A DNA stretch of 64,000 nucleotides from Amphiscolops sp. MND2022 (GCA_964187785.1 OZ076421.1:50096001-50160000), one strand, 5' to 3'; shown: positions 8,721-49,500, counted from the stretch's first letter. A program made the numbers and translations. The notes: generated by a model not told the origin, from the letters alone.

Positions 8721-11125
8721 TGAGTTTCATATTTGATTATGGCGGCCGTTTCCGTAGCTATCTTAACAGTTTCCAGTCTACTTTCGCTGAACCAAATTCG
8801 GTTTAGTTTCTGAACCCGGTAATGGTAAAAACAGAAAGTACTAGTCTTTCAAATGGAAGTTTTCTAATCGAAAGCTAAGTACTGTTCTGAAATCGCCTGT
8901 AACGCAACCACTCCTGGTGTCCTCCTAGTTGTTTTTTCCTTCATCGTGTGCTGGTGATTCACCGATTTTGAGCTCGATCTGGGCCAATTTAGCCACTGTA
9001 GGAGCCACCGACATGGTTCATGGTAAAGATACCATAGCTTCAGAAGCAAAGATTTTTCTAAGATTTTTTCCAGGATAGAAAATTGAGAAAGCTAAGCGGG
9101 GAATTTTTCTCAGATAGAAAAGGAATGAATTGACAAATAACTAATATAAATGACTTAGTGTGGCTTTTACGTGAAAATGAGAATGAATGAATGAAGATTC
9201 TGCCCAAAAAGTAAAAATTGTTATTTACAAAAAACTTGTCAACAAAAAGGCACATCAGTGAAGAATGAATTATGTACATATGTATAAATAACCAGTAAAA
9301 ATTTGACATTTCAGTCAAGGATTGGCATTATTTGTACCATTAATTACAATAAAATATTGCATGGTTATGTCATGCTAATAAACATATTCACAAAATGTAC
9401 AATTCACCGACAGAATTTGAGTGAAGATTAAATGGATGTTAATATGGGGCGGCATAATATTAAAGGTGTATGAAAAAGTTGTATATAAGTAACATTCTGA
9501 TTGACAACACAAAATTGGTGGTCATGCATAAAAAACTGAGCCACCAAAACATCCTAATGAGTTTCATCTTTGATTATGGCGGCCGTTTCCGTGGCTATCT
9601 TAACAGTTTCCAGTCTAATTTCGCTGAACCAAATTCGGTTTAGTTTCTGAACCCGGTAATGGTAAAAACAGAAAGTACTAGTCTTTCAAATGGAAGTTTT
9701 CTAATCAAAAGCTAAGTACTGTTCTGAAATCGCCTGTAAAGCAACCACTCCTGGTGTCCTCCTAGTTGTTTTTTCCTTCATCGTGTGCTGGTGATTCACC
9801 GGTTTTGAGCTCGATCTGGGCCAATTTAGCCACTGTAGGAGCCACCGACATGGTTCATGGTAAAGATACCATAGCTTCAGAAGCAAAGATTTTTCTAAGA
9901 TTTTTTCCAGGATAGAAAATTGAGAAAGCTAAGCGGGGATTTTTTCTGAGATAGAAAATGAATGAATTGACAAATAACTAAGATAGAGACTTAGTGTGGC
10001 TTTTACGTGAAAATGAGAATGAATGAAGATTCTGCCCAAAAAGTGAAAATTGTTATTTCCAAAATCTTGTCAACAAAAAGGCACATCAGTGGAGAATAAA
10101 TTATGTACATATGTATAAATAACCAGTAAAAATTTGACATTTCAGTCAAGGATTGGCATTATTTGTACCATAAATTACAATAAAATATTGCATGGTTATG
10201 TCATGCTAATAAACATATTCACAAAATGTACAATTCACCGACAGAATTTGAGTGAAGATTAAATGGATGTTAATATGGGGCGGCATAATATTAAAGGTGT
10301 ATGAAAAAGTTGTATATAAGTAATATTCTGATTGACAACACAAAATTGGTGGTCATGCATAAAAAACTGAGCCACCAAAACATCCTAATGAGTTTCATCT
10401 TTGATTATGGCGGCCGTTTCCGTGGCTATCTTAACAGTTTCCAGTCTAATTTCGCTGAACCAAATTCGGTTTAGTTTCTGAACCCGGTAATGGTAAAAAC
10501 AGAAAGTACTAGTCTTTCAAATGGAAGTTTTCTAATCAAAAGCTAAGTACTGTTCTGAAATCGCCTGTAAAGCAGCCACTCCTGGTGTCCTCCTAGTTGG
10601 TTTTTCCTTCATCGTGTGCTGGTGATTCACCGGTTTTGAGCTCGATCTGGGCCAATTTAGCCACTGTAGGAGCCACCGACATGGTTCATGGTAAAGATAC
10701 CATAGCTTCAGAAGCAAAGATTTTTCTAAGATTTTTTCCAGAATAGAAAATTGAGAAAGCTAAGCGGGGATTTTTTCTGAGAAAGAAAATGAATGAATTG
10801 ACAAATAACTAAGATAAAGACTTAGTGTGGCTTTTACGTGAAAAGGAGAATGAATGAAGATTCTGCCCAAAAAGTGAAAATTGTTATTTCCAAAAAACTT
10901 GTCAACAAAAAGGCACATCAGTGGAGAATAAATTATGTACATATGTATAAATAACCAGTAAAAATGTGACATTTCAGTCAATGATTGGCATTATTTGTAC
11001 CATTAATTACAATAACATATTGCATGGTTATGTCATGCTAATACATATTCACAAAATGTACAACTCACCGACAGAATTTGAGTGAAGATTTAAATGGATG
11101 TTAATATGGGGCGGTATAATATTAA
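6380..11125. repeat. ~835-bp tandem array with histone H3-like fragment, left arm
   Basis: The marker ctaatgagtttca recurs at ~8722, 9559 and 10390. The minus strand of each unit encodes KKTTRRTPGVVALQEI and, after a frameshift, [15 protein letters not shown]. Confidence 0.95.
8842..9014 (-). pseudogene. Histone H3-like (variant or CenH3-like) fragment, representative copy
   Basis: Reconstructed MSVAPTVAKLAQIELK...K.KTTRRTPGVVALQ(E/A)I / [15 protein letters not shown] versus canonical H3 [35 protein letters not shown]. It has frameshifts, a stop and a non-canonical N-tail. The end copy at ~27.97 kb reads [16 protein letters not shown] without the stop. Confidence 0.75.
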
Positions 11126-11154
11126 CATTACGACGCATATCCCTACACTTTTTG
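11126..11154 (+). repeat. Left terminal inverted repeat
   Basis: cattacgacgcatatccctacactttttg. Confidence 0.95.
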
Positions 11155-11156
11155 AA

Positions 11157-11575
11157 AACTGCGGAATTGACTGCTAACCGCAGGTAGCACCTACCAGACC
11201 TGGAATCCGCTGTTTAAAATGACGGATTTCAAAGACACACTTTATAACATGTGCAGCGGATTCCGCTTGCAATGTTTTCTGGATTCCGGGGACAAATCTC
11301 TTTACATTGAGTTTTTGGTGGAATTCAGAGGCATATATTATTATATTAGCAACAGTGGATTCCACAGTCGCTGTACCGGAATCCGGGGTCACATATTAAT
11401 ACACAGCATAAAATTAGTGGATTCCAAGGACAAGCTTTCGTAATGTAAAAGAAAAAACAGTGGAATCCACTGCTGCGACAGCGGATTCCGCAACAGCACC
11501 AGTGGATTCCGCTGTTGTGCAAGCGAATTCCGCAGTTTTTGACACCTGCTGTTTTTAACAGTGGATTCCACTGCA
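11157..11575. repeat. Left subterminal cluster of quasi-palindromic 11-mers (gcggattccgc / gtggattccac type)
   Basis: About 13 copies in mixed orientation. Confidence 0.9.
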
Positions 11576-11617
11576 AGATATCGCGAAATATGTACCTCGT
11601 TTAATCAGCACTTCTGA

Positions 11618-11823
11618 AGGCTCCAAACGTTTGAATTCAATGAAATTATCATAGTTTCTTATCATAGAACTAGATTAAAACACATCCAATTAAACACAAA
11701 ATACAGTAGTAGATTACGAGCAATACAGAAGTATGATACATATTTTAGTTTATCTCAGTAATCTTAATCCCAGAGACCATAGTAGAATACATAATGGAGA
11801 CAGTAATCTTAATCCCAGAGACA
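11618..11823 (+). repeat. 206-bp internal direct repeat, left copy
   Basis: aggctccaaa(c)gtttgaattcaatgaaattatc...cccagagaca, near-identical to 22301-22506 in the same orientation. Confidence 0.95.
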
Positions 11824-13295
11824 TTTGACCTTTACCGTATTTCGGTTGTAGACATACCAGCTATATTTACAAACATTAGATGTGGAGTTGCTACATCCAT
11901 TTATGTTATTGATGTAACCTAACTCAGTATACATTGTGATCAAAAGAGATACTATTTTAGAAACTCTATTCTTTTCATAGACTTAGTTAGAAATACAACA
12001 CTTACAACATTTATGTTTTAGGACCATTTGTATTCCTTCTGGTTCATCACCCATCAGCACACATCAAAGACACTTCAATGAATGACACACATAATTTGGA
12101 TTTGGCTGCACTATAGCCTTTTTAAATGTTCTAATTAATTAATTATTTCAAACTTGATAAATTTTAGTTGAATCAATTTTAGTCAATTTGTTCAAACGCA
12201 TTCAAAACTATGCGAACCTGGTGCAGCATATGCCATTTGATCTATAGTGATTTAAAGAATTTCTAAAATATTATTTAATTATAACAATTATAGTATTGAT
12301 TTGTAAGAATGTTATCAATACTTAACTTCATAATTTGTGCTGAGTTTTGGTAACAATTATATTGTGTCAAATGTGTTGTAATTAAGTTTTTGTATGCTTA
12401 TATTATCAATGAAGAAAAGAGCCAATTTCAGTCAATATTCAGTTGTCCGAACTTTGTAAAAAACAATCTTCTTTTACCATTCTTCTCTGTGTTTAAGAGA
12501 ATGCATTGTTTGTATTGATTCTGTAAAAATGTTATCAGTATTAACTTCATAATTTGTGCTAAATTTGTGTAACAAAAAGATTTTTGTAGCTGGCAAATTT
12601 TTTGATTCGTGACAGTTGCCGAGATATTTGATTTTCAGTTTGTCATTTTAAGCAATGAGGTTGCGATATTTTAGAACGCTACATTATATCTTGGTATATA
12701 TAATACGTGTCTAAAATGTGTCGGTAACTATAGCATCGCGCCGACCGTCATAAGCGGACTGGCGCCAATCTCACTCTTCTCTGCGTTTGAGAGAACGATG
12801 CATTGGTCACGTGACTGAAATTGTTCGATTTCAGAGTAAAATAAACAAACCGTTCTGACAGTGTGTGATTAGTTACTGCCAAGACAAGTTGCCCAGCTAT
12901 TGAATAATAACTCTCATTTGAACATTTGAAGATTCATAATCGAAATATATAATCTTTACAAAACTAGTTGAAGAATTCTCGAAGTCTTCTTACCAATCTT
13001 CTTTTGATCTTTACTAATTTAGTCTTCTTTTGATTCTAAATCAAGGTAAGTAACATTTATAATCTTCAACCTAATTGTCAAGATTATTTGAGGGAATCTC
13101 TGTATAGGATATTTAGTGTATTTTTGTATTTTTTTGTTTTCTATCAGAAGAGGATTTCGAGCGAAGTCATCGTTTTCAAGTGAACTTTTGCTCAACAATT
13201 CATAGGCTGCGGTGTCTTTTTCTAAAAGCTTTCCTCTGAAAATTGATCATTTTTCAAATGCAACATGCAAAAAGTTCATTCAGGCTCGACTAGGG

Positions 13296-13400
13296 TATAT
13301 ATATATATATATATTTATATATGTATACATATAAATACATATATAATCTGTAATAATCTGTAATTAGGATATATATAATCAGGATATATAATAATTAGGA
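13296..13400. repeat. (TA)n-rich microsatellite
   Basis: Runs of tatata, read directly. Confidence 0.8.
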
Positions 13401-13647
13401 TATATATTTGTCTCTGTATTAAGGATAAGATTCAAGAGAATCTCCGTATAAGATAGGTATATCTCTGTATTCAGAACAGGGCCGGGCTCATTTAAGGGAA
13501 TCTCTGTATTTGAGATAAATATTTGTCTCTGTATCTCAACTCAAAAAAGAAATTGAAACTTGTAGGTTTTAGCTGAACAAACACTTGACTAGGTTACTAA
13601 ACGATCCAAAATAGAATGTATAAAATGGCAGTTCTACAAGCAAAGAG

Positions 13648-14291
13648 TTATTCGGTAAAAAGTTCTTGGGCTGTCTTATCACCGTAATCGAAACGTAGTT
13701 GCTCGAAGGGTTCTATCTGTCGTCTAGCCTTCATTACTGCGATTCTCACAGGGGGATCTGTATAGTCCAAGAGGATGCTAGTAGACTTCATGTTGGCTTC
13801 TCTGTTATCAGCGTTGTTTTTTCTCTGGGTCGCGTGGTTGGCTAAACGACCCATACCTAAACGACATAACGAAATTGTAGAAATTTTTAATCTTACAACT
13901 CTAAAGATAAAACATTATTATTATTACATAAATTTGTTGGATGATCCACACAAATCTCGGAACTGGCATCTATAAGTCGCTTTGGTGGACCTGCTACTTC
14001 CATGACAAACTCGCTCGTAACGTCGGGTTGCTGCACGTACTCATCGAACTTCTGGCCGGTAATGACTTTCCCGTGGTAGTCTACAATTATTGTGTCTTTC
14101 TCCAGTTTTCCTAGACTGACAATGCCTCGACCGAATTTAGTGAAATGGGCATCGCAAATCCATTCCCACTTTTGGTTGTCAATTCGGTCTTTTAAACTCA
14201 TCTGGTTTTCGTATGACAACCTGTCTCCTTTGCAGATGATTGGATTGAACTGAGGCCTGCTTATACTGGTCCGTGATGATGTGCTCTTCAT
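13648..14291 (-). CDS. SET8/PR-Set7 (KMT5A)-like SET domain; last two exons (14291-13928, 13856-13648) of the minus-strand cargo gene
   Basis: Motifs GRG, DYHG, LIDAS, RLANHA and EQLRFDYG are all present. A 71-bp GT-AG phase-1 intron (13927-13857) joins HPTNLC to MGRLANH. There is no post-SET Cys cluster, as in SET8. Confidence 0.88.
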
Positions 14292-14523
14292 CTATACAAA
14301 ACACAGAGCATCCAAACGCAATGATTTTTTCTAATAACCATCGATCACTTAGCATTGGGCAGCTCCAGACAGGCAAAACACTTCTTTAGTTGCTTACCAT
14401 ATGGCACCAAAACAAATGATTTTTTTGCCCCATTCGATTTTCGATTTGTGCCATTGGGAAATTTTACCGTAATCTAATACACTGCAATCTAAAAAACTCG
14501 AACGCGACGTAACCCAACCTAAC

Positions 14524-14757
14524 CTGTTTTAAAGCTATAGTCATCGTTTTCTTGATGTCGCATTTGTCCCAGCCCATCCTCGCATAAAAGGTGTTCAGGC
14601 GCTGCTCCATATCACTGCAGTTTGGCAGTAACCAACCATTGTTCTTGATCCAATGTTGCGCTCTAATTGTTTGCCGATGGTACCGTAATTGGTCAAGTCT
14701 GTGTTTCACTGCCTTGGAAACCTCTTTGTGGGAATACTTTTCTGTCTGACTTTTCAC
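14524..14757 (-). CDS. Exon of the same gene (linker with RAQHWIKNNGW motif)
   Basis: Acceptor tttttag at 14758, donor cag|gttagg at 14523; 234 nt, phase 0 at both ends, in frame with the SET exons. Confidence 0.65.
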
Positions 14758-14851
14758 CTAAAAAAGAATTTCCATTCCTTTGTTGAAAGCGAAAGCTTAG
14801 AAAGTCAATATTTTATTACCAAACGAAAAAGAACAAAACCTGATTGATTAC

Positions 14852-15573
14852 TTGCTTCTGTTTGCCAATGGTGAAACCTGGATCGCTTCGAAACGGCAGA
14901 AAACTCGCAACATGTCTTTCTAGGGTGGTCTCATGGGGGTTATCGATGTGCTGCTGAAGCTAAAATACGCAAACTTAGGTAAACCCTGGAAACATTTGAA
15001 GCAATTTAGGTGTTTCTAGATTGAAGTTTAAGTTTTTACCGTGTCTTTGAATTGGTCGCATAGTTGGCGCACTTTGAAATGGGTTGAGCCATTGGAATTG
15101 ACGAAAAAGCGGTAAGTTCTCACTGTTCTTTCGTCATCTGCGAAAACCCTGGTGAAAACATCAAGACCTTCTTTTGGCAGGAAGTGCGGTCTTGCCTCCA
15201 GGTAGTATGTTTTCAAACCGTCCACTACCCATCGAGGAACAGTGTGCGACGATCTTATCGGAGAAAATTCAGCAGGCTCAACATAGATTGTGGTTCCTGC
15301 TGCAACTGCTGTTTCATCGTCTGTGTCCTCTTGTAAGGAAACGATGGCCTGTGTAACAGCATGCACTGTCAGCTCTATGATACCTTTGTCCATCATTGGT
15401 GGTGATGCATGCTTTGAGAGGAAACACGCCAAAGCACGAAAGAGCATTGTTCTTTGCTTTTGTGTCAGAGCTTCCGTTGTCTTGTACTGCTCTACAATGT
15501 CCCTGATGGCTATCTCAAGTTCTTCTTCAGTCGTCTCGCCACAAGTAACCCTGATAGAAGTCTTCGATATTTT
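14852..15573 (-). CDS. Exons (15573-15040 and 14959-14852) encoding a degenerate tyrosine-recombinase-like region
   Basis: ALACFLS...GIIELTVHAVTQA, LKTYYLEARP...FFVNSNG and ERHVASFL recall the YR domains fused to SET in animal mobile elements. The catalytic R, K, HxxR and Y residues are not evident. Both exons are phase 0 and open. Confidence 0.5.
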
Positions 15574-15847
15574 CTAAATATATTGAATACAAATTTCAAA
15601 AACAACTTCAAAAATTAGAATGAAAGTCAAATAATACTCAACAAGTTCAATCACAAATTCATATGCAAATTGGTTTTCAAATTCAAACACAAAATGAATT
15701 TTAAAATCTGGGAAATATGAAGTTTTTCTTGAGAGTTTTTTTCTTGAAAGTAAAGCTGAAAGAAAATGGAAATCCGTCACCGCTCAGCCAAGGCGGCAGC
15801 TGGAAATTTTCTTGAGGTATGGTACCGAAAACTGAAATCACAATGTA

Positions 15848-15965
15848 TTAGCATTTGTCTGCGGATTCCGCTGCACATGTGTTAACATTTGCTCCTAAAT
15901 TCCGCAACGCTCTTTTGGAAGTCAATGATATGAAACATAAGACAGCGGATTCCGCTGTTATGATG
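15848..15965 (-). repeat. Inverted, diverged copy of the 215-bp unit at 17.1-17.6 kb, inside an intron of the SET gene
   Basis: Its reverse complement matches cataacagcggaa.ccgctg...gcggaatttagg...atgttaa.acatgt.cagcggaatccgcag. Confidence 0.75.
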
Positions 15966-16055
15966 AACAAACTTGTTTTCGTGCTCTATGTGGTTCTAGA
16001 AGGTGAAAATCTCCCGCTTCAGTTTGAAATTTTCAATTGAAATTCAAAAACTGAC

Positions 16056-16496
16056 CTCCGGAATATCAATTGTTGATCTTTTAGGGCTAGTTGCTCTTTT
16101 CCGGCTTTCTTCAAGTTGCTCAGTCGACGAAGCTTCAAGCGGAGGAAGAAAAAGGTCCGGCGAGTGTTCAGGTGGTGGAAGAATTTCACCAAACATGTTC
16201 GGAGGAAGTTCGTGCGAAGTTCCATCCATGTTGAGCCATTGCGATTGATTCCAATCAAAATATGACGGTTGTGAATATTGTCGAACTGCAGCCGGACTCT
16301 TTCCGGTAGGGGTAGTCAAATATTCATGCGATCGTGAGAGAGGGGTTAATGATGGAACTGGAGGAGGAGGTAGTGTAAGTGTAAACGTCTCGGGTTGCAC
16401 TGGCGTTGAGGTAACTAGTTGAGGCGATTGAAGTTCTGTCAAATTTCCAAGATCTTCTAATGGTTGTGACTGAATTTGATGCGTTTGCAGAGACAT
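16056..16496 (-). CDS. Pro/Ser/Thr-rich first coding exon of the SET gene
   Basis: Open frame MSLQTHQ...IDIPE ending at the phase-0 donor gag|gtcagt. It joins in frame to the exon starting at 15573. The full six-exon model is about 629 aa with no stops. Confidence 0.6.
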
Positions 16497-16649
16497 TGTA
16501 GGTTTTTTCGAGAAATAGAACGATGTACAATTCAAATTGACTGATTCCTAGTAGATCAAAATTATATTATGAATAGTATTATGAATAGTATTATAATACT
16601 ACTGAAACTGCTAATTACTTAACTGCTTATTGCTACCATAGTAATTTAA

Positions 16650-16799
16650 CACTTCCACTTTGACAAATTAAAAAAAGCCTCATCAGACGCTGCCAATGAA
16701 AATAACTGTAATTATATAATTATAATGATTATAATTTTATAATTATTTCTATTATAATTTTTGGCAGCGCCTGATGCGGTTCTTAATCATTTGGAAGTG
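16650..16799. mobile_element. 150-bp MITE with TTAA flanks (piggyBac-like)
   Basis: TTAA|CACTTCCA...TGGAAGTG|TTAA, with inner inverted arms catcagacgctgccaa / ttggcagcgcctgatg around an AT-rich core. Confidence 0.7.
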
Positions 16800-17084
16800 T
16801 TAAAACCACACCTCATATATCATTTGACTTGAGTCATTAGCACTTTTTCTCATTGTTCGTTCTTTGGCCCGAAAGAATGCCCGACAAGTTTTCATCAGGA
16901 CTTGAAAGATGAATGCGTGAAACACATGTATCTTGGATTGGCCGAATGACACTCATATGAATAAAACCCTATCTATAACAATGAAATACAATCTATGTTA
17001 CACAATCTAGAACAACATTGAGCACCAAACGATTTTTTCCTCATAACAACAAAATGTTTTATACTCCATATTATTGCCTCCCAA

Positions 17085-17640
17085 AGAAACAGTGCGGAAT
17101 TTAAGGACAAATTTTATTACATGTACAGCGGAATCCTCAGACAAATGTTAATACATTGCCATTTAAGTTTCCTGTACAATACCTGAAGAAAATTTTCAAA
17201 AATGCTTAGTAGCATAAAACAGTGGATTCCGTGGTTAGCGAGAGGGATGCGCCTCATAACAGCGGAACCCGCTGTTTTGTATTCCAGATTGATGCCTTCC
17301 AAAATCGCAGTGCGGAATTTAGGGACCTATGTTAATACATGTACAGCGGAATCCGCAGGCGAATGTTAATACATTGCGATTTCGATTTCCTGTACCATAC
17401 CTCAAGAAAATATCCAAATATGCTTAGTAGCATAAAACAGTGGATTCCGTGGTTAGCGAGAGTGATGCGCCTCATAACAGCGGAACCCGCTGTTTTGTAT
17501 TCCAGATTGATGCCTTCCAAAATCGGAGTGCGGAATTTAGGGACCTATGTTAATACATGTACAGCGGAATCCGCAGGCAAATGTTAATACATTGCGATTT
17601 CCATTTCATGTACCAGACCTCAAGAAAATATCCAAATCTG
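17085..17640. repeat. 215-bp tandem repeat (~2.5 copies) built from the subterminal gcggaatccgc motif
   Basis: ORFs at 17117 and 17332 are offset by 215; the motifs are shared with the element ends. Confidence 0.85.
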
Positions 17641-19429
17641 CTCAGTAGCATGAAACTGTGTTTAGGAATTTTATTTTTTTGAACCCTCTCTTGAAAATGC
17701 ATTTTGGGACCAGTAATCTCAAATTTCCCAGGTTGAAATCCTAATTAACTAGAAGTCAAGTAGAATCTCTTAAGATTCTATCAGTGTCTATATGTCTGTA
17801 GTTGTCTTATAAGCGCCTATAAAAGTGCCTAAACTCGTCTACTGAAGCTTTTGTGATCCGTTCCTCCAAGGTGGCTGGGGAGTCGTCGCAGGGTACTTGG
17901 GAGCAGTCGCTCATTCCGAAACCCAGAGAAATGTCATTTAGAGATTGAAACTTTCATCTAACGAGAATACAGTATGCTCAGGCGCAGTTGGTGCAGTGAG
18001 ATCAAATCGAATAAAGTAAATATCACGTAAAGTTGCTTCAGTAACAGTTTCCGTTGGACATTTGCGATTGCAACATCTGCCTACTAACTTGTGCATTGTG
18101 TCATGATTGCATGTATGACTGATGCATATCTCTGGAAGTAGGAAAAGTAACAGCACGCGCGGCATGTAAGACTGATGCTTACCTCTGGATTTAGGAAAAG
18201 TATCTGTAATCTCTTGAAAACTAAGATCAAATGCTATTGAAGTATTTATTTTCCAACCTCTGCAATTATGACCTTGATTGTAGGAAATTGTATTTGGCCT
18301 AAAAATTTTTTGTTTGAAGGTTCTCTCTGGAAATATGCCCCAATTTCAATGCCCCACGTGCCAACTGACCCTCTCAAATAAGGGTAATCTAACCCGGCAC
18401 ATGAATCAGAGTTGCGGTAAGAGAGAGCAGACGCGCAGCACAAGAATGAAGTGCATGTTTTGTGGCTCTCCTACAGATGGCTCCTTCTTCAAGGACGTGC
18501 AGCAGACTGCTGATCATGTGCTGACACTCCGATGCTGGAATGCTCGAAATGAACTAACAGCGGAAGATCGGGCCAAATTACTGGAGCCCACACTGGAAAA
18601 CTTTGTTCTCGTAAGAGACACCTACCCGGGCTGCAAGAAGGCCTTCTCGGCAGAAGGGAGGACGAGGAAGTTCTTTAATCAACCGCCACCATCTAAGTTG
18701 GTTAAACGAGAAGTCCAAGTCCGAGAAACCAGTGCGACATCATGTGGGAGGTAATTCAAATGGGAGGACACACCCTGGTGGGAGGTAATTCAATCAAACA
18801 AATATATTTAATAAAAACGTAGCTTATGGGCATGAATAAGAATTAAGTCATAGGTTCTGTTTGATTTTGAATGATTCACATTTTTGAGTTCAAATGATTT
18901 ATTTTTGAACAGGTTCCGGAAATCAGCAGTCCTGTGGAGCCTGAGCCTGTTTCCTCCTCTTCCACCCTCCATTTTGCAACAGAGGCAGAAGAAGTTATTG
19001 TGGAAGAGTTTGTTGTTCTTCTGGAGGACAAGCGAGAAGAAGAGGCAATCGCTTCCATGGTAGCTTTGGAAGCCTTCAAGATTGCAGAAGTCAACCACAT
19101 TCAAGTTGAAGAGCCCAAATGTGTATGTATTTTTTGAATGACTGTTTCATGTTTCATGTAATATTTTTCGGGATGTGTAATTTTTATGGATTTCTAGTTT
19201 CAAAAGCATAATGGTTTGGAGGGATTTAAACTTCTAAAACCGATAATGCTTTAGGAAAAGTGGCAACAGAAACGACGACGTTTGCACAAGAGTGTATCAC
19301 GAATGCCAGCGACACTTCCAAACCTGACCAGATGTACGCTTACCATGCGAAGGATGAACATGACGAACACGAACCTCATGAAATCGTTTGCTAGCATCTG
19401 GGAACTACGTGACCTTATGAGTCAAGTAA

Positions 19430-19620
19430 GAACTTCTCTGGATTTAAGAATGAGATCTCTTCTCAGGATCTTAGAATGCAATCTCTTCTCCGGACTCTAG
19501 ATCTAATCGGTTTTGAGTCTCTGGATTCACGAATAAGATATCTTCTTTAGACTTAAATCTCTGGTTTTAAGAATTAGGTCTTTTCTCTAGATATAAATCT
19601 CTGGATTGACGAATAAGGTT
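19430..19620. repeat. Degenerate intronic minisatellite (tctctggatt.a.gaat)
   Basis: About 5 imperfect copies in a JmjC gene intron. Confidence 0.6.
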
Positions 19621-21042
19621 TTGACTTCTGTGTAATGTAACATGGAGTAAATTTAGATTCCAAATGCTACCTCGATGCGGCGTGACATAACAGCAGGAGA
19701 AGTCACACCAGAACTGCTGTCAGACCCTGCTTTTTTGGACGGGGAATATGTCTTCGTCATCCGTGACGGTTTGGCCATCCCCGGCTTCAACACGAAGCTA
19801 ACCAGAGAGAAGATGTGCCGAATGTCGTCTGTTCAACAAATGATGCAGAATTACACTGGCAACCCCGTAACACTTCGTTATTTGACGACGAAGTTCGAGG
19901 TTAGGAGAGTCAATGGAACTGCTAAAAGAGATACAAACAAAAATTTTGTTCTCTGTTATAAATTTGAGAATACATGTACCTGACCTGATATTTATTATTT
20001 AGGAAGGGAAGAAAGTTGTGCCAGGTAACAGAGTTACCGAGATGATGGAGAGTGACCCCCCCAAATTCTTCAACGTCATCGATGCCGAGGCAAACAAGTG
20101 CCCAGGAGCCTCTTTCAAGAAGCCTAGCTTTCTAGACGAGGTTTCCCTTGGGCACATGAACTGGGAACAGACACCTGAAGAATTGCGTCCAGTGCGTGAA
20201 TCGAATTATTTGCTGATTTCACAAAATGGCGCAATCACGAGGTTCCACCAGGATTTTTCATCCACAAGTGTCTTGTATTATCTGGCCAAAGGTTGGTAAC
20301 AAGTTTTAGTACAAGTAAAATGAAAATCGTGTTTTTTTTAAATAAGTCAAGTGTTGGTGGTTGACGGACTATTGTTACAGGAGTTAAAGTTTTTCATGTT
20401 GTGAGGCCCACTGCCAGAAACGTTGACTTGTTCAAGGCGTTCAAGAATCTCCCCAGGCAAGTAAAATTGTTTATACTTACACTACACAGTGCTTTTCTCT
20501 CTGTTATGCATGTAAGACTGATAACCGGGACAAATTTATTACTGTTATTGATTGTTTAGAAGAGACCTCTTTTTTGGCACCCATGAAGAGCTTGACATGG
20601 GCGGCTGCGCAAAGTCACAAAAGGACAAGCGTGCCATTGACTTGCGCTCCGTGCACAAACGGCATTCTTGTTAAAGGCAAGAAGGCTTTGGACAGAGGAG
20701 GATACCTATGCACTATTGAAATGCTGGAGTACGTCATTTCAAGGAAGAAAGCATTTGTCAGTTTGACATGGGATGAAAGTGCGGACTTCACTAGCAGAGT
20801 TCCAGCGTCTTCAGTAAGGCTCCCGGAAGAAAATTACACAGCATTGGACCCCGTGAGTCTAGACAGCATGGTTTGCCCCATTGATCGAGCATATGCAGTA
20901 TTTTCTGCCATCAAGCGGGCCATAGGTCTTTGTCGAAGAAAACATTCTGCGAGTTTCAATGTGTGCCCCGCAACACCTTTCACCAGGCGATGTGTTGGAT
21001 TCGAAGCAGATTCAGCTCGGGATAATGTACGTATTTCAGAAT

Positions 21043-21315
21043 AAAATTGGTCAATTAAGAAGATCATTAAGTAATTGTTAACTAAGAGCATTGAAGCAAT
21101 TCAAGATGATCGTTTTTTGAGTTCATGTTATTGTTTAGTTCAGATTTGCTGCTCATATTGAAACTGGACTCAAAGTGAAAACAAAATTGGTCAATTAAGA
21201 AAATCATTAATTATTTGCTAACTAGGAGTAATGAAACAATTCAAGATGATCGTTTTTTGAGTTCATGTTATTGTTTAGGTCAGATTTGCTGCTCATATTG
21301 AAACTGGACTTCGCG
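21043..21315. repeat. 140-bp tandem duplication spanning an intron/exon boundary
   Basis: aaaattggtcaattaagaa...atattgaaactggact at 21043 and 21183. Confidence 0.85.
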
Positions 21316-21659
21316 GCTGCCATCGCTCGTGGGACTCACTCTTTGGAGAGCGGTGGGACATCTTGCCAGGAGACGGAGAAGAGTCGCTGGACACCCTCAT
21401 CAGAGCAATCCGATTCTCTGAGACGCAAGACTTTCTCTTCCGAACCATCAAGGTTCAAATAAACTCTTGCGAAGGACGCTTCCGAAATGAAGAAAAATAT
21501 CGGGAAATCCTCAATATCAACTCTAAACTTAATGAGGGTTTCTTATAAATGAGGGTTTCTTATAAACTTTATAAACATAAAGAATATATGTTCATGTGTG
21601 TATAATCATGTGTGTATTTGTATTATTATTAATACTGCTAGCATCAAATAATAAATCAA

Positions 21660-21990
21660 GATTAGAATCAAGATCATTTATCCTAATCCCAGAGAAAATA
21701 GTAGAGTACATGTTGTTTTTAGTAGCATGTAGGCCTTTAATACATAATTGAGACAGTAATTTTAATCTCAGAGACAATAGTTGTATACATGTAGTATTAA
21801 TAGCATGTAGGCTTATTATACATAATCCTAACCCCAGAGACAAAAGTAGCATACATGTAGTAATAATAGCATGTAGGCCTATAATAAATACATAATGGAA
21901 ACAGTAATCCTAATCCAAGAGGCTTTAGTAGAATACATTCAGGCCTATAATACATCAAGGAGACACAGTTATCTTAAACACAGAAATTGT
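21660..21990. repeat. Degenerate repeats related to the 3' part of the 206-bp direct repeat
   Basis: Recurring cagtaatc(c/t)taatcccagaga.a..agtag..tacat motif. Confidence 0.65.
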
Positions 21991-22142
21991 ATACACCCTG
22001 TAGAGGTTTCAGACAATGTATATTAATTAGTCGGCTTTTATTTCATGGTTGTATTGTGTCATTGATGCTCATTTATTAATACCTGCCAATTTAGTGCAGA
22101 TGAAGAATTGTCTTCGAAAAGAGAGTACAAAATAGTTAGAGT

Positions 22143-22506
22143 AAAGTTTGAATTCAATGAAATTATCATAGTTTCTTATCATAGAACTAGATTAAAACAC
22201 ATGCAATTAAACACAAAATACAGTAGTAGATTACGAGCAATACAGAATTATGATACATATTTTAATTTATCTCAGTAATCTTAATCCCAGAGACCATAGT
22301 AGGCTCCAAAAGTTTGAATTCAATGAAATTATCATAGTTTCTCATCATAGAACTAGATTAAAACACATCCAATTAAACACAAAATACAGTAGTAGATTAC
22401 GAGCAATACAGAATTATGATACATATTTTAATTTATCTCAGTAATCTTAATCCCAGAGACCATAGTAGAATACATAATGGAGACAGTAATCTTAATCCCA
22501 GAGACA
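22143..22506 (+). repeat. 206-bp internal direct repeat, right copy (22301-22506), preceded by a partial tandem copy (22143-22300)
   Basis: Direct alignment by eye to 11618-11823. Confidence 0.95.
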
Positions 22507-22509
22507 ACA

Positions 22510-22990
22510 GTGGATTCCATACATGAAGGCCTATAATACATCAAGGAGACTTGTTTATCCTAAACCCAGAAACTGTATACGCCCTATTAAACACAATAAT
22601 AAAGGTATACAGCAAGCTTTATACTAGCCTGCGCTCGTCTGCGGATTCCGCTGTCATACAACTTGAAACAAATGTCACGCAGAGCTGTCAGTGGATTCCG
22701 CTTCACAAAACAAACATTTTATTACTTGCTTGCATTAGTCTCCGGAATCCGCTGACACTGCCCCGGATTCCGCTGGTACTGGTCCGGATTCCGCTGTCAC
22801 TGCCCCGCAATCCGCTGCAAGCAGTGGATTCCACGATTTCGAGCTGACCAATGCAGCGGATTCCGCGATTTTGCCTTTTCGTCAACTGAAATCGCGAGAA
22901 ATTATACACTGCGGTATTTGTCCCTGAATTCCACGCGGCGAATTTCGCTCTTTGCGGTTGGCATGTTTTAAAGCTTGGCCCAGGATTCCA
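22510..22990. repeat. Right subterminal cluster of quasi-palindromic 11-mers
   Basis: About 11 copies of gcggattccgc / ccggattccgc / gtggattccac. Confidence 0.9.
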
Positions 22991-23019
22991 CTGCTCAAAC
23001 GGCTCAACTTTGATCTGCA

Positions 23020-23048
23020 CAAAAAGTGTAGGGTTATGCGTCGTAATG
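23020..23048 (-). repeat. Right terminal inverted repeat
   Basis: caaaaagtgtagggttatgcgtcgtaatg is the reverse complement of the left TIR with one mismatch. Confidence 0.95.
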
Positions 23049-26000
23049 AAAGGTGTATGAAAAAGTTGTATATAAGTAATATTCTGATTGACAACATAAA
23101 ATTGGTGGTCATGCATAAAAAACTGAGCCACCAAAACATCCTAATGAGTTTCATGTTTAATTATGGCGGCCGTTTCCGTAGCTATCTTAACAGTTTCCAG
23201 TCTAATTTCGCTGAACCAAATTCGGTTTAGTTTCTGAACCCGGTAATGGTAAAAACAGAAAGTACTAGTCTTTCAAATGGAAGTTTTCTAATCGAAAGCT
23301 AAGTACTGTTCTGAAATCGCCTGTAAAGCAACCACTCCTGGTGTCCTCCTAGTTGTTTTTTCCTTCATCGTGTGCTGGTGATTCACCGATTTTGAGCTCG
23401 ATCTGGGCCAATTTAGCTACTGTAGGAGCCACCGACAGGGTTCAAGGTAAAGATACCATAGCTTCAGAAGCAAAGATTTTTCTAAGATTTTTTCCAGGAT
23501 AGAAAATTGAGAAAGCTAAGCGGGGATTTTTTCTGAGATAGAAAATGAATGAATTGACAAATAACTAAGATAAAGACTTAGTGTGGCTTTTACGTGAAAA
23601 TGAGAATGAATGAAGATTCTGCCCAAAAAGTGAAAATTGTTATTTCCAAAAAACTTGTCAACAAAAAGGCACATCAGTGGAGAATAAATTATGTACATAT
23701 GTATAAATAACCAGTAAAAATTTGACATTTCAGTCAAGGATTGGCATTATTTGTACCATAAATTACAATAAAATATTGCATGGTTATGTCATGCTAATAA
23801 ACATATTCACAAAATGTACAATTCACCGACAGAATTTGAGTGAAGATTAAATGGATGTTAATATGGGGCGGCATAATATTAAAGGTGTATGAAAAAGTTG
23901 TATATAAGTAATATTCTGATTGACAACATAAAATTGGTGGTCATGCATAAAAAACTGAGCCACCAAAACATCCTAATGAGTTTCATCTTTGATTATGGCG
24001 GCCGTTTCCGTAGCTATCTTAACAGTTTCCAGTCTAATTTGGCTGAACCAAATTCGGTTTAGTTTCTGAACCCGGTAATGGTAAAAACAGAAAAGAATAG
24101 TCTTTCAAATGGAAGTTTTCGAATCAAAAGCTAAGTACTGTTCTGAAATCGCCTGTAAAGCAACCACTCCTGGTGTCCTCCTAGTTGTTTTTTTCTTCAT
24201 CGTGTGCTGGTGATTCACCGATTTTGAGCTCAATCTGGGCCAATTTAGCCACTGTATGAGCCACCGAATGGTTCATGGTAAAGATACAATAGCTTCAAAA
24301 GCAAAGATTTTTCTAAGATTTTTTCCAGGATAGAAAATTCAAAGCTAAGCGGGATTTTTTCCGAGATAGAAAATGAATGAATTGACAAATAACTAATATA
24401 AAAGACTTGACGTGGCTTTTACGTGAAAATGAGAATGAATGATTGAAGATTTTGCCCAAAAAGTGAAAATTGTTATTTACAAAAAACTTGTCAACAAGAA
24501 GGCACATCAGTGGAGAATAAATTATGTACATATGTATGAATAACTAGTGAAAATTTGACATTTCAGTCAATGATTGGCATTATTTGTACAATTAATTACA
24601 ATAAAATATTGCATGGTTATGTCATGCTAATGAACATATTCACAAAATGTACAATTCACCGACAGAATTTGAGTGAAGATTAAATGGATGTTAATATGGG
24701 GCGGTATAAGATTAAAGGTGTATGAAAAAGTTGTATATGAATAAAATTCTGATTGACAACATAAAATTGGTGGTCATGCATAAAAAACTGAGCCACCAAA
24801 ACATCCTAATGAGTTTCATCTTTGATTATGGCGGCCCTTTCCGTAGCTATCTTCACAGTTTCCAGTCTAATTTCGCTGAACCAAATTCGGTTTGATTCCT
24901 GAACCCGGTAATGGTAAAAACAAAAAGTACTGGTCTTTCAAATGGAAGTTTTCTAATCGAAAGCTCAGTACTGTTCTGAAATTTCCTGTAAAGCAACCTT
25001 TCCTGGTCTCCTCCTAGTTGTTTGTTTCTTTATCGTGTGCTGGCGATTGACCAGTTTTGAGCTCGATCTGGGCCAAATTAGCCACTGTAGGAGCCACCGA
25101 CATGGTTCATGGTAAAGATACCATAGGTTCAAAAGCGAAGATTTTTTTAAGATTTTTTCCAGGATAGAAAATTGAAAGCTAAGCGGGGATTTTTTTTGAG
25201 ATAGAAAATGAATGAATTGACAAATAACTAATATAAAAGACTTGGCGTGACTTTTACGTGAAAATGAGAATGAATGATTGAAGATTTGGCCCAAAAAGTG
25301 AAAATTGTTATTTACAAAAAACTTGTCAACAAAAAGGCACATCAGTGAAGAATAAATTATGTACATATGTATAAACAACCAGTAAAAATTTGACATTTCA
25401 GTCAATGGTTGGCATTATTTGTACCAATATTTACAATAAAATATCGCATGGTTATGTCATGCTAATAAACATATTCACAAAATGTACAATTCACCGACAG
25501 AATTTCAGTGAAGATTAAATGGATGTTAATATGGGGCGGTATAAGATTAAAGGTGTATGAAAAAGTTGTATATGAATAAAATTCTGATTGACAACATAAA
25601 ATTGGTGGTCATGCATAAAAAACTGACCCACCAAAACATCCTAATGAGTTTCATCTTTGATTATGGCGGCCCTTTCCGTAGCTATCTTCACAGTTTCCAG
25701 TCTAATTTCGCTGAACCAAATTCGGTTTGATTCCTGAGCCCGGTAATGGTAAAAACAAAAAGTACTGGTCTTTCAAATGGAAGTTTTCTAATCGAAAGCT
25801 CAGTACTGTTCTGAAATCTCCTGTAAAGCAACCTTTCCTGGTGTCCTCCTAGTTGTTTGTTTCTTTATCGTGTGCTGGCGATTCACCGGTTTTGAGCTCG
25901 ATCTGGGCCAAATTAGCCACTGTAGGAGCCACCGACATGGTTCATGGTAAAGATACCATAGGTTCAAAAGCGAAGATTTTTCTAAGATTTGTTGCAGGAT

Positions 26001-45995: not shown

Positions 45996-46560
45996 AATGT
46001 CGTTCAAGGTCCCGCATTCAATTCCATTGAAAGATACCTCGATGAAGATCCCCAGGGATTTCAAAAAGTTTACTTAAGTGAACAGAAATTATTTGGCCTT
46101 GTAGCTACGAAAATGTTCCGAAAGGGTGACTTTCTTCTCTTCTACAGAGGTGAACGCATTTCAAAGCAGGAATACAACCGCAGACTGAGAGTGAGTATCT
46201 CATTCAAAAGTAATGTGTCAAAAACTTAACAGTTTTGTTTTTGGTAAGTTATAAACTTTGTACTAAAACAATTTTTCAGCTCGGAAAACAGTACTTGTTC
46301 ACCGATATTGAAACGATGTTCATCGACGCCGAGAACGAAGAAACTGCTGGTCTAGCGCGCTACATGAACAATGACCATCGAAAACCAAATGCCAAAGCTG
46401 TCCATTACGTCGACTCCAGTGAGATATTTTACAGATAAAACTACCAAATCTCATCAATTTTATTCCTTCAGGAGGAATACCACAAGTCCAATTCGTCGCC
46501 ATCCGCGAAAGATAAGGAAGTCAGTTACGACTATAATGGACTTGACCTCACTTGGAGGAC
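45996..46560 (+). pseudogene. Second SET8-like methyltransferase gene; founder copy of the 890-bp array, frameshifted before EEVSYDY
   Basis: NVVQG...FGLVATKMFRKGDFLLFYRGERISKQEYNRRLR | intron 46191-46279 | LGKQYLF...IDAENEETAGLARYMNNDHRKPNAKAVHYVDS | intron 46419-46471 | RGIPQVQFVAIR, then 7 nt, then out-of-frame KEVSYDYNGLDLTWR. Confidence 0.85.
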
Positions 46561-49500
46561 AATTCGGTACTTTCAAGCAACCAACTTCGACTCCATTTCC
46601 AAATGTATTTATATTTCTGGTCGTTGAAGCATGTATTGTTTCGAACAGGAACAAGAAAGTCCAAATCCTCGTGGATTCAGAAGAGTCAGATTCAAACGAA
46701 CAAGAGAAGTATAAAACTTGAGAATACAGCTATTGGGTTCCGTTGAAATCTCGATGTGGCTTTGCAAATAATTGCGTTTTTTCTAGAACTAGTGACGAAG
46801 ACTGTGAACACCTACCACCTCCGAATGTGGTACCAACAGTCCTGGAAGCAAAGTAAAAACCTTTAAAAAATTCCAATGAACAAAAAGTTAGAAGGTGCAG
46901 TTCCTCATGCGTTCTGCGTTTCAGCAAACGAAAGCGAATTACAACGAGGAAAGAAGAAAACTATCAAAACTTTATTGGAAACCAAGTCAAGAAACATTGG
47001 ATACCGAAATGGTAAAAACTGTAATTTTAGATTAGATGCAGTCCAATGCATTTCAAAGCAGGAATACAACCGCAGACTGAGAGTGAGTATCTCATTCAAA
47101 AGTAATGTGTCAAAAATTTAACAGTTTTGTTTTTGGTAAGTTATATACTTTGTACTAAAATAATTTTTCAGCTCGGAAATCAGTACTTGTTCAACGATAT
47201 TAAAACGATGTTCATCGACGCCGAGAACGAAGAAACTGCTGGTCTAGCGCGATACATGAACAAAGACCATCGAAAACCAAATGCCAAAGCTGTCAATTAC
47301 GTCGACTCCAGTGAGATATTTTAGATAAAACTACCAAATCTCATCAATTTTTTCCTTCAGGAGGAATACCACAAGTCCAATTCGTCGCCATCCGCGAACG
47401 ATGAGGAAGTCAGTTACAACTATAATGGACTTGACCTCACTTGGAGGACAATTGGGTACTTTCAAGCAACCAACTTCGACTCCATTTCCAAATTCATTTA
47501 TATTTCTGGTCGTTGAAGCATGTATTGTTTCGAACAGGGACACGAAAGTCAAAATCCTCGTGGATTCAGAAGAGTCAGATTCAAACGAACAAGAGAAGTA
47601 CAAAACTTGAGAATACAGCTATTGGGTTCGGTTGAAATCTCGATAAGGCTTTGCAAATAATTGCGTTTTTTCTAGAGCTAGTAACGAAGACTGTGAACAC
47701 CTACCACCTGCGATTATGGTATCAACAGTCCTGGAAGCAAAGTAAAAACCTTTAAAATATTCCAATGAACAAAAAGTTCGAAGGTGCAGTTCCTCATGCG
47801 TTCTGCGTTTCAGCAAACGAAAACGAATTACAACGAGGAAAGAAGAAAACTATCAAAACTTTATTGGAAACCAAGTCAAGAAACATTGAATACGGAATTG
47901 GTAAAAACTGTATTTTTAGATTAGATGCAGTCCAATGCATTTCAAAGCAGGAATACAACCGCAGACTGAGAGTGAGTATCTCATTCAAAAGTAATGTGTC
48001 AAAAACTTAACAGTTTTGTTTTTGGTAAGTTATAAACTTTGTACTAAAACAATTTTTCAGCTCGGAAATCAGTACTTGTTCACCGATATTGAAACGATGT
48101 TCATCGACGCCGAGAACGAAGAAACTGCTGGTCTAGCGCGCTACATGAACAATGACCATCGAAAACCAAATGCCAAAGCTGTCCATTACGTCGACTCCAG
48201 TGAGATATTTTACAGATAAAACTACCAATTCTCATCAATTTTTTTTCCTTCAGGAGGAATAGCACAAGTCCAATTCGTCGCCATCCGCGAAAGATGAGGA
48301 AGTCAGTTACAACTATAATGGACTTGACCTCACTTGGAGGACAATTGGGTACTTTCAAGCAACCAACTTCGACTCCATTTCCAAATTTATTTATATTTCT
48401 GGTCGTTGAAGCATGTATTGTTTCGAACAGGAACAAGGAAGTCAAAATCCTCGTGAATTCAGAAGAGTAAATTCAAACGAACAAGAGAAGTATAAAACTT
48501 GGAAAAAACAGCTATTGGGTTCCGTTGAAATCTCGATGCGGCTTTGCAAATAATTGCGTTTTTTCTAGAGCTAGTTACGAAGACTGTGAACACCTACCAC
48601 CTCCGAATATGGTACCAACAGTCCTGGAAGCAAAGTAAAAACCTTTAAAATATTCCAATGAACAAAAAGTTAGAAAGTGCAGTTCCTCATGCGTTCTGCG
48701 TTTCAGCAAACGAAAACGAATTACGAGGAAAGAAGAAAACTATCAAAACTTTATTGGAAACCAAGTCAAGAAACATTGAATACGGAATTGGTAAAAACTG
48801 TATTTTTAGATTAGATGCAGTCCAATGCATTTCAAAGCAGGAATACAACCGCAGACTGAGAGTGAGTATCTCATTCAAAAGTAATGTGTCAAAAACTTAA
48901 CAGTTTTGTTTTTGGTAAGTTATAAACTTTGTACTAAAACAATTTTTCAGCTCGGAAATCAGTACTTGTTCACCGATATTGAAACGATGTTCATCGACGC
49001 CGAGAACGAAGAAACTGCTGGTCTAGCGCGCTACATGAACAATGACCATCGAAAACCAAATGCCAAAGCTGTCCATTACGTCGACTCCAGTGAGATATTT
49101 TACAGATAAAACTACCAATTCTCATCAATTTTTTTCCTTCAGGAGGAATAGCACAAGTCCAATTCGTCGCCATCCGCGAAAGATGAGGAAGTCAGTTACA
49201 ACTATAATGGACTTGACCTCACTTGGAGGACAATTGGGTACTTTCAAGCAACCAACTTCGACTCCATTTCCAAATTTATTTATATTTCTGGTCGTTGAAG
49301 CATGTATTGTTTCGAACAGGAACAAGAAAGTCAAAATCCTCGTGAATTCAGAAGAGTAAATTCAAACGAACAAGAGAAGTATAAAACTTGGAAAAAACAG
49401 CTATTGGGTTCCGTTGAAATCTCGATGCGGCTTTGCAAATAATTGCGTTTTTTCTAGAGCTAGTAACGAAGACTGTGAACACCTACCACCTCCGAATATG

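Follow-up and report, generated by a model that had tools for sequence, protein, structure and literature searches.

An 11.9-kb transposon copy in Amphiscolops sp. is a deletion derivative of a larger family that probably couples a RAG1/Transib-type transposase with predicted histone-methylation genes

The DNA analysed here, referred to as the window, is a 64,000-nucleotide stretch of the Amphiscolops sp. MND2022 genome (GCA_964187785.1 OZ076421.1:50096001-50160000). Positions 11126-23048 are occupied by an 11.9-kb element that is bounded by terminal inverted repeats (TIRs) and that carries two divergent genes arranged head to head, one encoding a SET-domain protein on the minus strand and the other a C2H2-zinc-finger (ZnF)/JmjC protein on the plus strand (Table 1). 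A preliminary description had regarded this arrangement as a mobile cassette with a histone methyltransferase and a demethylase as cargo. The comparisons reported below make it very probable that the window copy is instead a deletion derivative of a four-gene TIR family, about 18-19 kb long, with a transposase of the RAG1/Transib type.

The two TIRs, 29 nt each, are complementary at 28 of 29 positions and form the single TIR pair of that sequence in the window; shuffled sequences yielded none. The element lies in a satellite with a unit of about 833 bp that spans 6380-27988 and whose copies are 92-98% alike, and the unit directly to its left is 98% identical to its neighbours. The filled site reads ...ATATTAA/CATTACG...CGTAATG/AAAGGTG, with an AA on either side of the element. 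Eight neighbouring satellite units preserve the empty site with a single AA (...ATATT-AA-AGGTG), and therefore exactly AA was duplicated and the insertion was precise. These results indicated that 11126-23048 is a genuine, precisely bounded TIR transposon that inserted after the satellite had formed. The preliminary description had given the same TIRs, the same AA target-site duplication (TSD) and a recent insertion into pre-existing satellite, all of which were confirmed: the window copy has about 0.2% private changes, and the copies of the family are about 99% alike.

An open reading frame (ORF) search found no transposase in the window copy, as had been stated before, and the element would need one in trans. 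Copies on C2, C1, C10 and C11 contain an extra 6,458-6,487 bp between element positions 9493 and 9497. The segment missing from the window copy held two minus-strand transposase ORFs of 491 and 594 amino acids (aa), about 117 bp apart, the plus-strand 5' (first) exon of a fourth gene (G4), and the last exon of the JmjC gene (GQALILPAKMIHAV...), which bears the His that serves as third Fe ligand. The transposase is thus absent because of a copy-specific 6.46-kb deletion, the junction of which (...GTCAC-AAA-AGGAC...) occurs once in the whole assembly. The last JmjC exon in the window is cut at 20618, and its frame runs 19 codons beyond the junction to a stop at 20672-20674. Because the final exon has been deleted, the protein encoded by the window copy would be without its third Fe ligand, and the writer/eraser pair is therefore not intact. 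The head-to-head arrangement of the two genes that was described earlier stands, but the JmjC gene is incomplete.

The window copy is accordingly a non-autonomous internal-deletion derivative of the ~18-19-kb family. Each of nine short derivatives that were compared has its own breakpoints, and two 355-bp elements turned out to be different deletions, which fits deletions arising from interrupted repair. The 6.46-kb deletion, with its 3-bp filler, is of the kind that end joining or an interrupted gap repair would leave, and it may have arisen in place, its junction being unique in the genome. The earlier proposal of mobilisation in trans holds in so far as the copy has no transposase of its own; for movement of the 11.9-kb form itself it is no more than plausible, given that single junction. 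Having kept both ends and an apparently intact SET gene, the copy would move only with transposase supplied by other copies and would express, at most, the SET protein. It is ordinary as a defective deletion derivative and unusual for its family.

Across the 1.07-Gb genome, the whole element has matches of 97-99% identity at many loci. The 29-bp TIR alone occurs 521 times (260 forward and 261 reverse; a control pattern gave 0). All 14 TIR pairs that were fetched, 176 bp to 18.7 kb apart, are flanked by perfect 2-bp TSDs (TA, AT, AT, AA, GT, TC, CT, AC, TA, TC, TT, AC, CA and AC), and are paired copies of the kind that the preliminary description had proposed to seek. The TSD of a full copy on C10, 19.3 kb long including a 200-N gap, is TT. 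Since identical dinucleotides of varied sequence flank all of these elements, a 2-bp TSD without a fixed target sequence is a property of the family. Full copies are 18-19 kb long, and the 594-aa transposase exon is open in at least nine other copies in the genome. These results show a family of young TIR transposons, very probably of the cut-and-paste kind. The genome also holds further subfamilies at 76-95% identity and a second family, the transposase of which is 44-47% identical and has open frames of up to 1,175 aa.

Tandem repeats, in which assemblies often err, flank the window copy, and the possibility was considered that it is an artefact of assembly or a single rearrangement of the satellite DNA. 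This explanation, to which we assign a negligible probability, was refuted by the hundreds of copies that share these ends at unrelated loci, by the precise empty sites and by the presence of the element in runs from two samples.

In the full copy on C10 (L035 and L036), element positions 16001-16130 are an inverted, 85%-identical copy of left-end positions 10-139. The outermost 9 bp of the TIR are missing from this internal copy, which is situated in the intron of the fourth gene and may have remained from a nested end or serve as an internal binding site.

Full copies encode a transposase of about 1,100 aa, of DDE type and with a C-terminal BRCT domain. In Pfam searches with the transposase ORFs BRCT_2 alone was matched (E 7.8e-7), and nine long homologues gave BRCT only, with no RAG1, Transib or Transposase_21 model. 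PDB searches with two transposase ORFs and with a 17-sequence profile returned nothing relevant at the sequence level. An exhaustive HMMER search recovered 239 homologue clusters, including uninterrupted proteins of 1,000-1,300 aa. From a 62-sequence alignment, an AlphaFold (AF2) model was obtained for P0039:240-830 with a predicted local distance difference test score (pLDDT) of 91.4 and a predicted template-modelling score of 0.88. When this model was compared with the PDB by Foldseek, all 45 significant matches were RAG1, HzTransib or BbRAGL (amphioxus RAGL). Alignment with VIA-align to RAG1 483-1007 gave Z 20.0 and a root-mean-square deviation of 3.5 Å over 379 residues, followed by HzTransib (Z 18.5) and BbRAGL (17.6); the less related transposases of the P element (12.4), ISCth4 (8.9) and Hermes (8.5) scored lower. 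Conserved acidic residues (P0039 numbering) are D370/D374, D454 and E744/E747. Judged by order along the chain rather than by superposition, they would lie in an RNase H-like core, on strand one, right after strand four and where a helix begins. On the strength of this model, the large ORF is taken to be the RAG1/Transib-fold transposase of the family. The preliminary description had asked whether other copies have a transposase; full copies do carry one, with this predicted fold and with no Transposase_21 match.

Imperfect decapeptide repeats of the 'VPNNVPINGS' type, in numbers that differ between copies, lie in the N-terminal region of the transposase (exon A, L031:5007-6479, and also the C11 copy).

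The SET gene of the window copy is predicted to encode about 630 aa, and its exons are ungapped and 99-100% identical to those of other copies. The second family has an N-domain-SET protein of the same N-terminal domains and Pfam SET as a 660-aa intronless ORF (G000:C7:6903300-6905282, L062:801-2783; also G000:C3, L064), about 10 kb from its transposase, and this intronless paralogue of the same architecture supports the five-exon model of the window gene. Pfam SET was matched at E 1e-10 to 5e-9 in contiguous homologues and only at E 0.1 when one exon of the window gene was used by itself. In the PDB, a profile built from the SET proteins matched KMT5A/SETD8 at about 2e-12, with KMT2 the next class at 1.5e-5, and the GxG, NH and FDY motifs are present in the window model. 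The SET domain is thus of the SET8/KMT5A type by its nearest solved relative, as proposed earlier, and may have the corresponding activity, H4K20 monomethylation.

Exon N2 of the SET gene has language-model (Atlas) features of the Phage_integrase/DUF3504 clan (0.94), the likeness being to the first half of the catalytic domain of a tyrosine recombinase. A Box-I-like 'LDRE.SN.TV' motif is present, with R in the homologues L059 and L060 and K in the window family. The AF2 model of N2 was poor (pLDDT 53.6), and Foldseek found nothing significant, with XerD, Cre and XerH among the weak rows. No Pfam or PDB profile match was obtained for the N2 region; a profile that included the 660-aa paralogue matched SET proteins only. 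The N2 homologue search found just 8 close relatives, and a search with the SET protein of L061 found 2 matches only. We lean, with some reserve, towards N2 being a recombinase-derived and probably non-catalytic DNA-binding domain. A further alternative builds on the integrase-clan features and the weak recombinase rows, and supposes Crypton-like movement of the element by this tyrosine-recombinase-like domain, the large ORF not being the mobility enzyme. We consider it highly improbable: all 14 pairs have perfect TIRs and 2-bp TSDs, as is characteristic of DDE cut-and-paste transposition, acidic residues are conserved in the RAG1-fold protein, the window family has a lysine where Box I has its arginine, and N2 has neither a confident model nor a significant fold or profile match.

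Elsewhere in the genome there are many ORFs of 455-458 aa that share the N2-like domain alone, at 29% identity and with no Pfam match.

At the level of the family, the JmjC protein has a complete HxD...H triad, with HQD in exon 20018-20296 and the His in the last exon. The HxD exon matched only KDM2A, PHF8 and KDM7 in the PDB; the C-terminal JmjC exon matched ceKDM7A (C. elegans KDM7) at 9.8e-7 and PHF8 at 1.2e-5. Pfam gave a weak Cupin_8 match only (E 0.021). An N-terminal PHD finger, as found in KDM7/PHF8, is absent from the protein, which has a single C2H2-type finger instead. By its nearest relatives the JmjC protein belongs to the KDM7/PHF8/KDM2 group, in agreement with the preliminary label, and its function is predicted on that basis.

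Homologues in other samples bear on the origin of these genes. L059 (ERZ1742291) and L060 (ERZ25074608) contain SET with N2, G4, transposase and JmjC exons at 28-52% aa identity, and L058 has SET, G4 and transposase together. In L061 (ERR15087781) and in the P0085 contig (ERZ21818094), a Pfam SET gene adjoins a transposase 25-32% identical to that of the window family. The gene set persists across lineages, with differing gene order and orientation. Because four other samples have the same genes next to transposase homologues that are 25-50% identical, they are ancestral genes of the family and not captured host genes. This result bears directly on the earlier view of a transposase-less cassette of captured host methyltransferase and demethylase genes, moved in trans as a self-contained chromatin-editing unit. 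That view drew on the absence of a transposase between two retained ends and on the SET and JmjC types, which were rightly guessed. We now regard it as very unlikely, since the transposase is missing only through the copy-specific deletion, the same genes accompany diverged transposase homologues in other samples, and the JmjC gene is truncated. The writer/eraser pair is an old, co-inherited part of the family rather than cargo, and its eraser is without the third Fe ligand in the window copy.

In L058:14076-21818, just downstream of the transposase homologue, lies a long-terminal-repeat (LTR) retrotransposon with integrase, reverse transcriptase/RNase H and gag-protease, which probably interrupts the element.

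The palindrome YGGAWTCCR occurs 24 times in the window, and all 24 copies are inside the element, in agreement with the subterminal clusters described before. Ten lie in the left subterminal 450 bp (11201-11562) and eight near the right end (22511-22857), the other six falling in the region between the SET and JmjC genes (15862-17565). That region also contains a 218-bp unit in tandem, and at 15801-15963 lies an inverted copy of 163 nt. The copy number of a ~166-bp repeat, present near both ends, differs among family members, and element positions 1594-1990 are repeated in other copies.

Table 1 Features of the element and its target site in the window.
Feature	Position	Strand	Evidence or remark
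Target-site duplication AA, left copy	11124..11125		8 empty satellite units with one AA
29-bp TIR, left, starts CATTACG	11126..11154	+	Inverted-repeat match; 521 matches genome-wide
Left cluster, ten YGGAWTCCR palindromes, presumed protein-binding sites	11201..11570		Motif search
~166-bp repeat, left copy, recurs in tandem near right end	11605..11770	+	Matches Tandem Repeats Finder (TRF) consensus
SET gene, about 630 aa, all exons open	13651..16547	-	ORFs; GT-AG model guided by L059
SET8-type SET exons	13929-14283 and 13651-13856	-	Predicted model
SET exon N3	about 14519-14757	-	Predicted model
SET exon N2, possibly tyrosine-recombinase-derived	15031-15573	-	Predicted model
SET exon, S/T/P-rich, 5'	16047-16547	-	Predicted model
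218-bp unit, 2.8 tandem copies, SET/JmjC divergent intergenic region	17055..17660		Units hold YGGAWTCCR palindrome
C2H2-ZnF/JmjC gene, truncated	18314..20674	+	ORFs, profile matches
ZnF exon	18314-18751	+	C2H2-type finger E 1.3e-4, below Pfam's cut-off
JmjC exons	19675-19980, 20018-20296 (HxD motif, HQD), 20365-20556	+	ORFs, PDB matches
Deletion junction (6.46 kb), 3-bp AAA filler at 20619-20621	20616..20624		Comparison with full copies; unique in assembly
Fourth gene (G4), 3' exon remnant, 5' exon deleted	20622..21044	+	ORFs; homologues in L058-L060
166-bp repeat, two tandem copies near right end	22143..22468	+	TRF
Right cluster, eight YGGAWTCCR palindromes	22511..22865		Motif search
29-bp TIR, right, ends CGTAATG	23020..23048	-	Inverted-repeat match
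Target-site duplication AA, right copy	23049..23050		8 empty satellite units

Taken together, these observations suggest how the family may operate. Full copies would encode the transposase-BRCT protein, the SET8-type methyltransferase, the C2H2-ZnF/JmjC protein and the fourth protein. The transposase would recognise the 29-bp TIRs and the subterminal palindromes and then excise the element, which would be reinserted by a 2-bp staggered cut with no strict target sequence. The accessory genes, which have stayed with the transposase over deep divergence, most likely exert their effect on nucleosomes at the element, close to it or at its targets. Their products could keep the element transcribable and accessible, or they could tie excision and integration to methyl-lysine/BRCT repair chromatin.

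A rival explanation gives the accessory genes of the same element another role: they would serve transposition itself rather than anti-silencing, either by marking or reading target chromatin for site choice or by bringing in double-strand-break repair with the help of the BRCT tail and of H4K20-type methylation. In its favour, methylated H4K20 has readers in break repair, the SET domain is of the SET8 type, and the transposase has a conserved BRCT domain. Promoter-like regions inside the element also contain the palindrome motif, and the window copy sits in satellite DNA. Against it, the insertion sites of the 14 pairs have no sequence preference. We judge this explanation rather unlikely, if a serious competitor. 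The most far-reaching reading, which we advance tentatively and place a little short of an even chance, is that the family is an undescribed, superfamily-level RAG1/Transib-fold lineage with a 2-bp TSD, a BRCT tail and variant zinc motifs. Its long-kept histone-methylation kit would consist of a SET8-type writer joined to a DNA-binding domain of recombinase origin, an eraser of the KDM7 type and possibly a reader, and would set the chromatin of its own copies or targets.

Several points weigh against the main explanation, that of a deletion derivative of a four-gene RAG1/Transib-type family. The canonical CMCT motifs C(2)C and H(3-4)H are absent among 17 homologues of the transposase, which have the variant motifs C-x-D-x-x-H and H-x9-H and in which no Cys pair is conserved; 13 of the 17 have C523, and all have H528, H741 and H751. 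In the fourth gene, Pfam, PDB and Atlas searches recognised no domain, Tudor, chromo and MBT included. Variation within the family is equal in coding (49/2079) and non-coding (63/2074) positions and consists mostly of singletons, so that constraint (purifying selection) is visible only between lineages. The search for RNA runs returned only four to five DNA-like runs from one study, the contigs of which have no intron-skipping joints over 13500-19400; being DNA-like, these runs have no bearing on expression or on the predicted gene models. Trans-mobilisation of deleted forms is plausible, and the nine short derivatives all have breakpoints of their own. Finally, enzyme activity, substrates and palindrome binding are predictions from sequence.

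The CMCT clade comprises EnSpm/CACTA, Mirage, Chapaev, Transib, Plavaka and ESTA, as well as Lanisha, together with RAG1 and is marked by termini of the form 5'-CA..TG-3', by TSDs of 2-5 bp and by the motifs C(2)C and H(3-4)H; PlavakaA makes 2-bp TSDs (PMC12730594). The window family shares with this clade the CA..TG termini, the 2-bp TSD, subterminal repeats and a modelled DDE core that superposes on RAG1, Transib and BbRAGL. It differs in its variant motifs, its BRCT tail, its four genes in about 19 kb and the lack of a Pfam RAG1, Transib or Transposase_21 match. Mirage also makes 2-bp TSDs, a length that the window family shares. CACTA/EnSpm proper has CACTA termini, a 3-bp TSD and a TnpD-type Transposase_21, whereas the window family has CATTA termini, a 2-bp TSD and no Pfam transposase match. 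The CACTA/CMC-like assignment made earlier is therefore retained for the broad CMCT clade, to which termini, TSD and fold point, and abandoned for CACTA itself. Transib, ProtoRAG and RAG1 provide the best structural match over the whole catalytic core (Z 17.6-20), and the 'EGxExxN'-type glutamate helix of the window family's transposase presumably resembles that of RAG1. In both groups, moreover, the transposase travels with a chromatin-related partner gene. In contrast to Transib/RAG1, the window family has a TSD of 2 bp rather than 5 bp, CATTACG rather than a CACGGTG-like heptamer, no detected RAG2-like kelch/PHD partner and a sequence identity of only ~10%. The element is thus CMCT-like, neither CACTA nor Transib, and is not filed as a canonical CMCT member.

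Two other groups of transposons invite comparison. Ds of Ac and KP of the P element are internal-deletion derivatives. Like them, the window copy has kept both ends, has lost its interior with a short junction filler and would depend for movement on the transposase of full copies; unlike them, it keeps an accessory SET gene that is apparently whole and may still make a chromatin enzyme. Transposons with epigenetic modifiers include fungal TET/JBP transposons, HarbingerS and Phytophthora MuDR with SET, and plant VANDAL elements with anti-silencing factors (PMC12730594). In these, as in the window family, a DNA transposon carries an enzyme or regulator of epigenetic marks, presumably for its own benefit. 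The window family differs in keeping a histone methyl writer and eraser (and G4) with one transposase lineage in an animal-type genome; TET/JBP genes, by contrast, passed repeatedly between lineages. In the open literature, Repbase Reports being outside that search, we found no transposon with this gene set and no description of a RAG1-like transposase together with its own histone-methylation writer and eraser in one family.

Beyond the host satellite, the window contains a second satellite at 28665-~45000, with a period of ~1.34 kb and some units of 1.93 kb, and a third at 46443-64000, with a period of ~890 bp and about 20 copies. The third satellite has no tblastn similarity to the SET exons of the element, and ARAGORN found no tRNA over the whole window. 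Three different satellites within 64 kb suggest a heterochromatic neighbourhood.

Transposons are normally targets of histone methylation, and a family with its own writer and eraser suggests that the handling of host chromatin can be encoded by the element itself; with hundreds of young copies, this is directly testable. The window copy is a natural experiment in this respect, having ends and a SET gene and no transposase. Pfam has no signature for the family, so that its SET and JmjC genes will be listed by gene-finders among the chromatin genes of the host. The transposase would add a distant RAG1/Transib branch with a 2-bp cut geometry and a BRCT tail, which is relevant to the diversification of RAG-type enzymes and to the way in which they began to work with chromatin-reading partners. 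If the most far-reaching reading is true, an animal-type genome would harbour a chromatin system encoded by a transposon, and the family would form a new branch beside the ancestors of the V(D)J recombinase.

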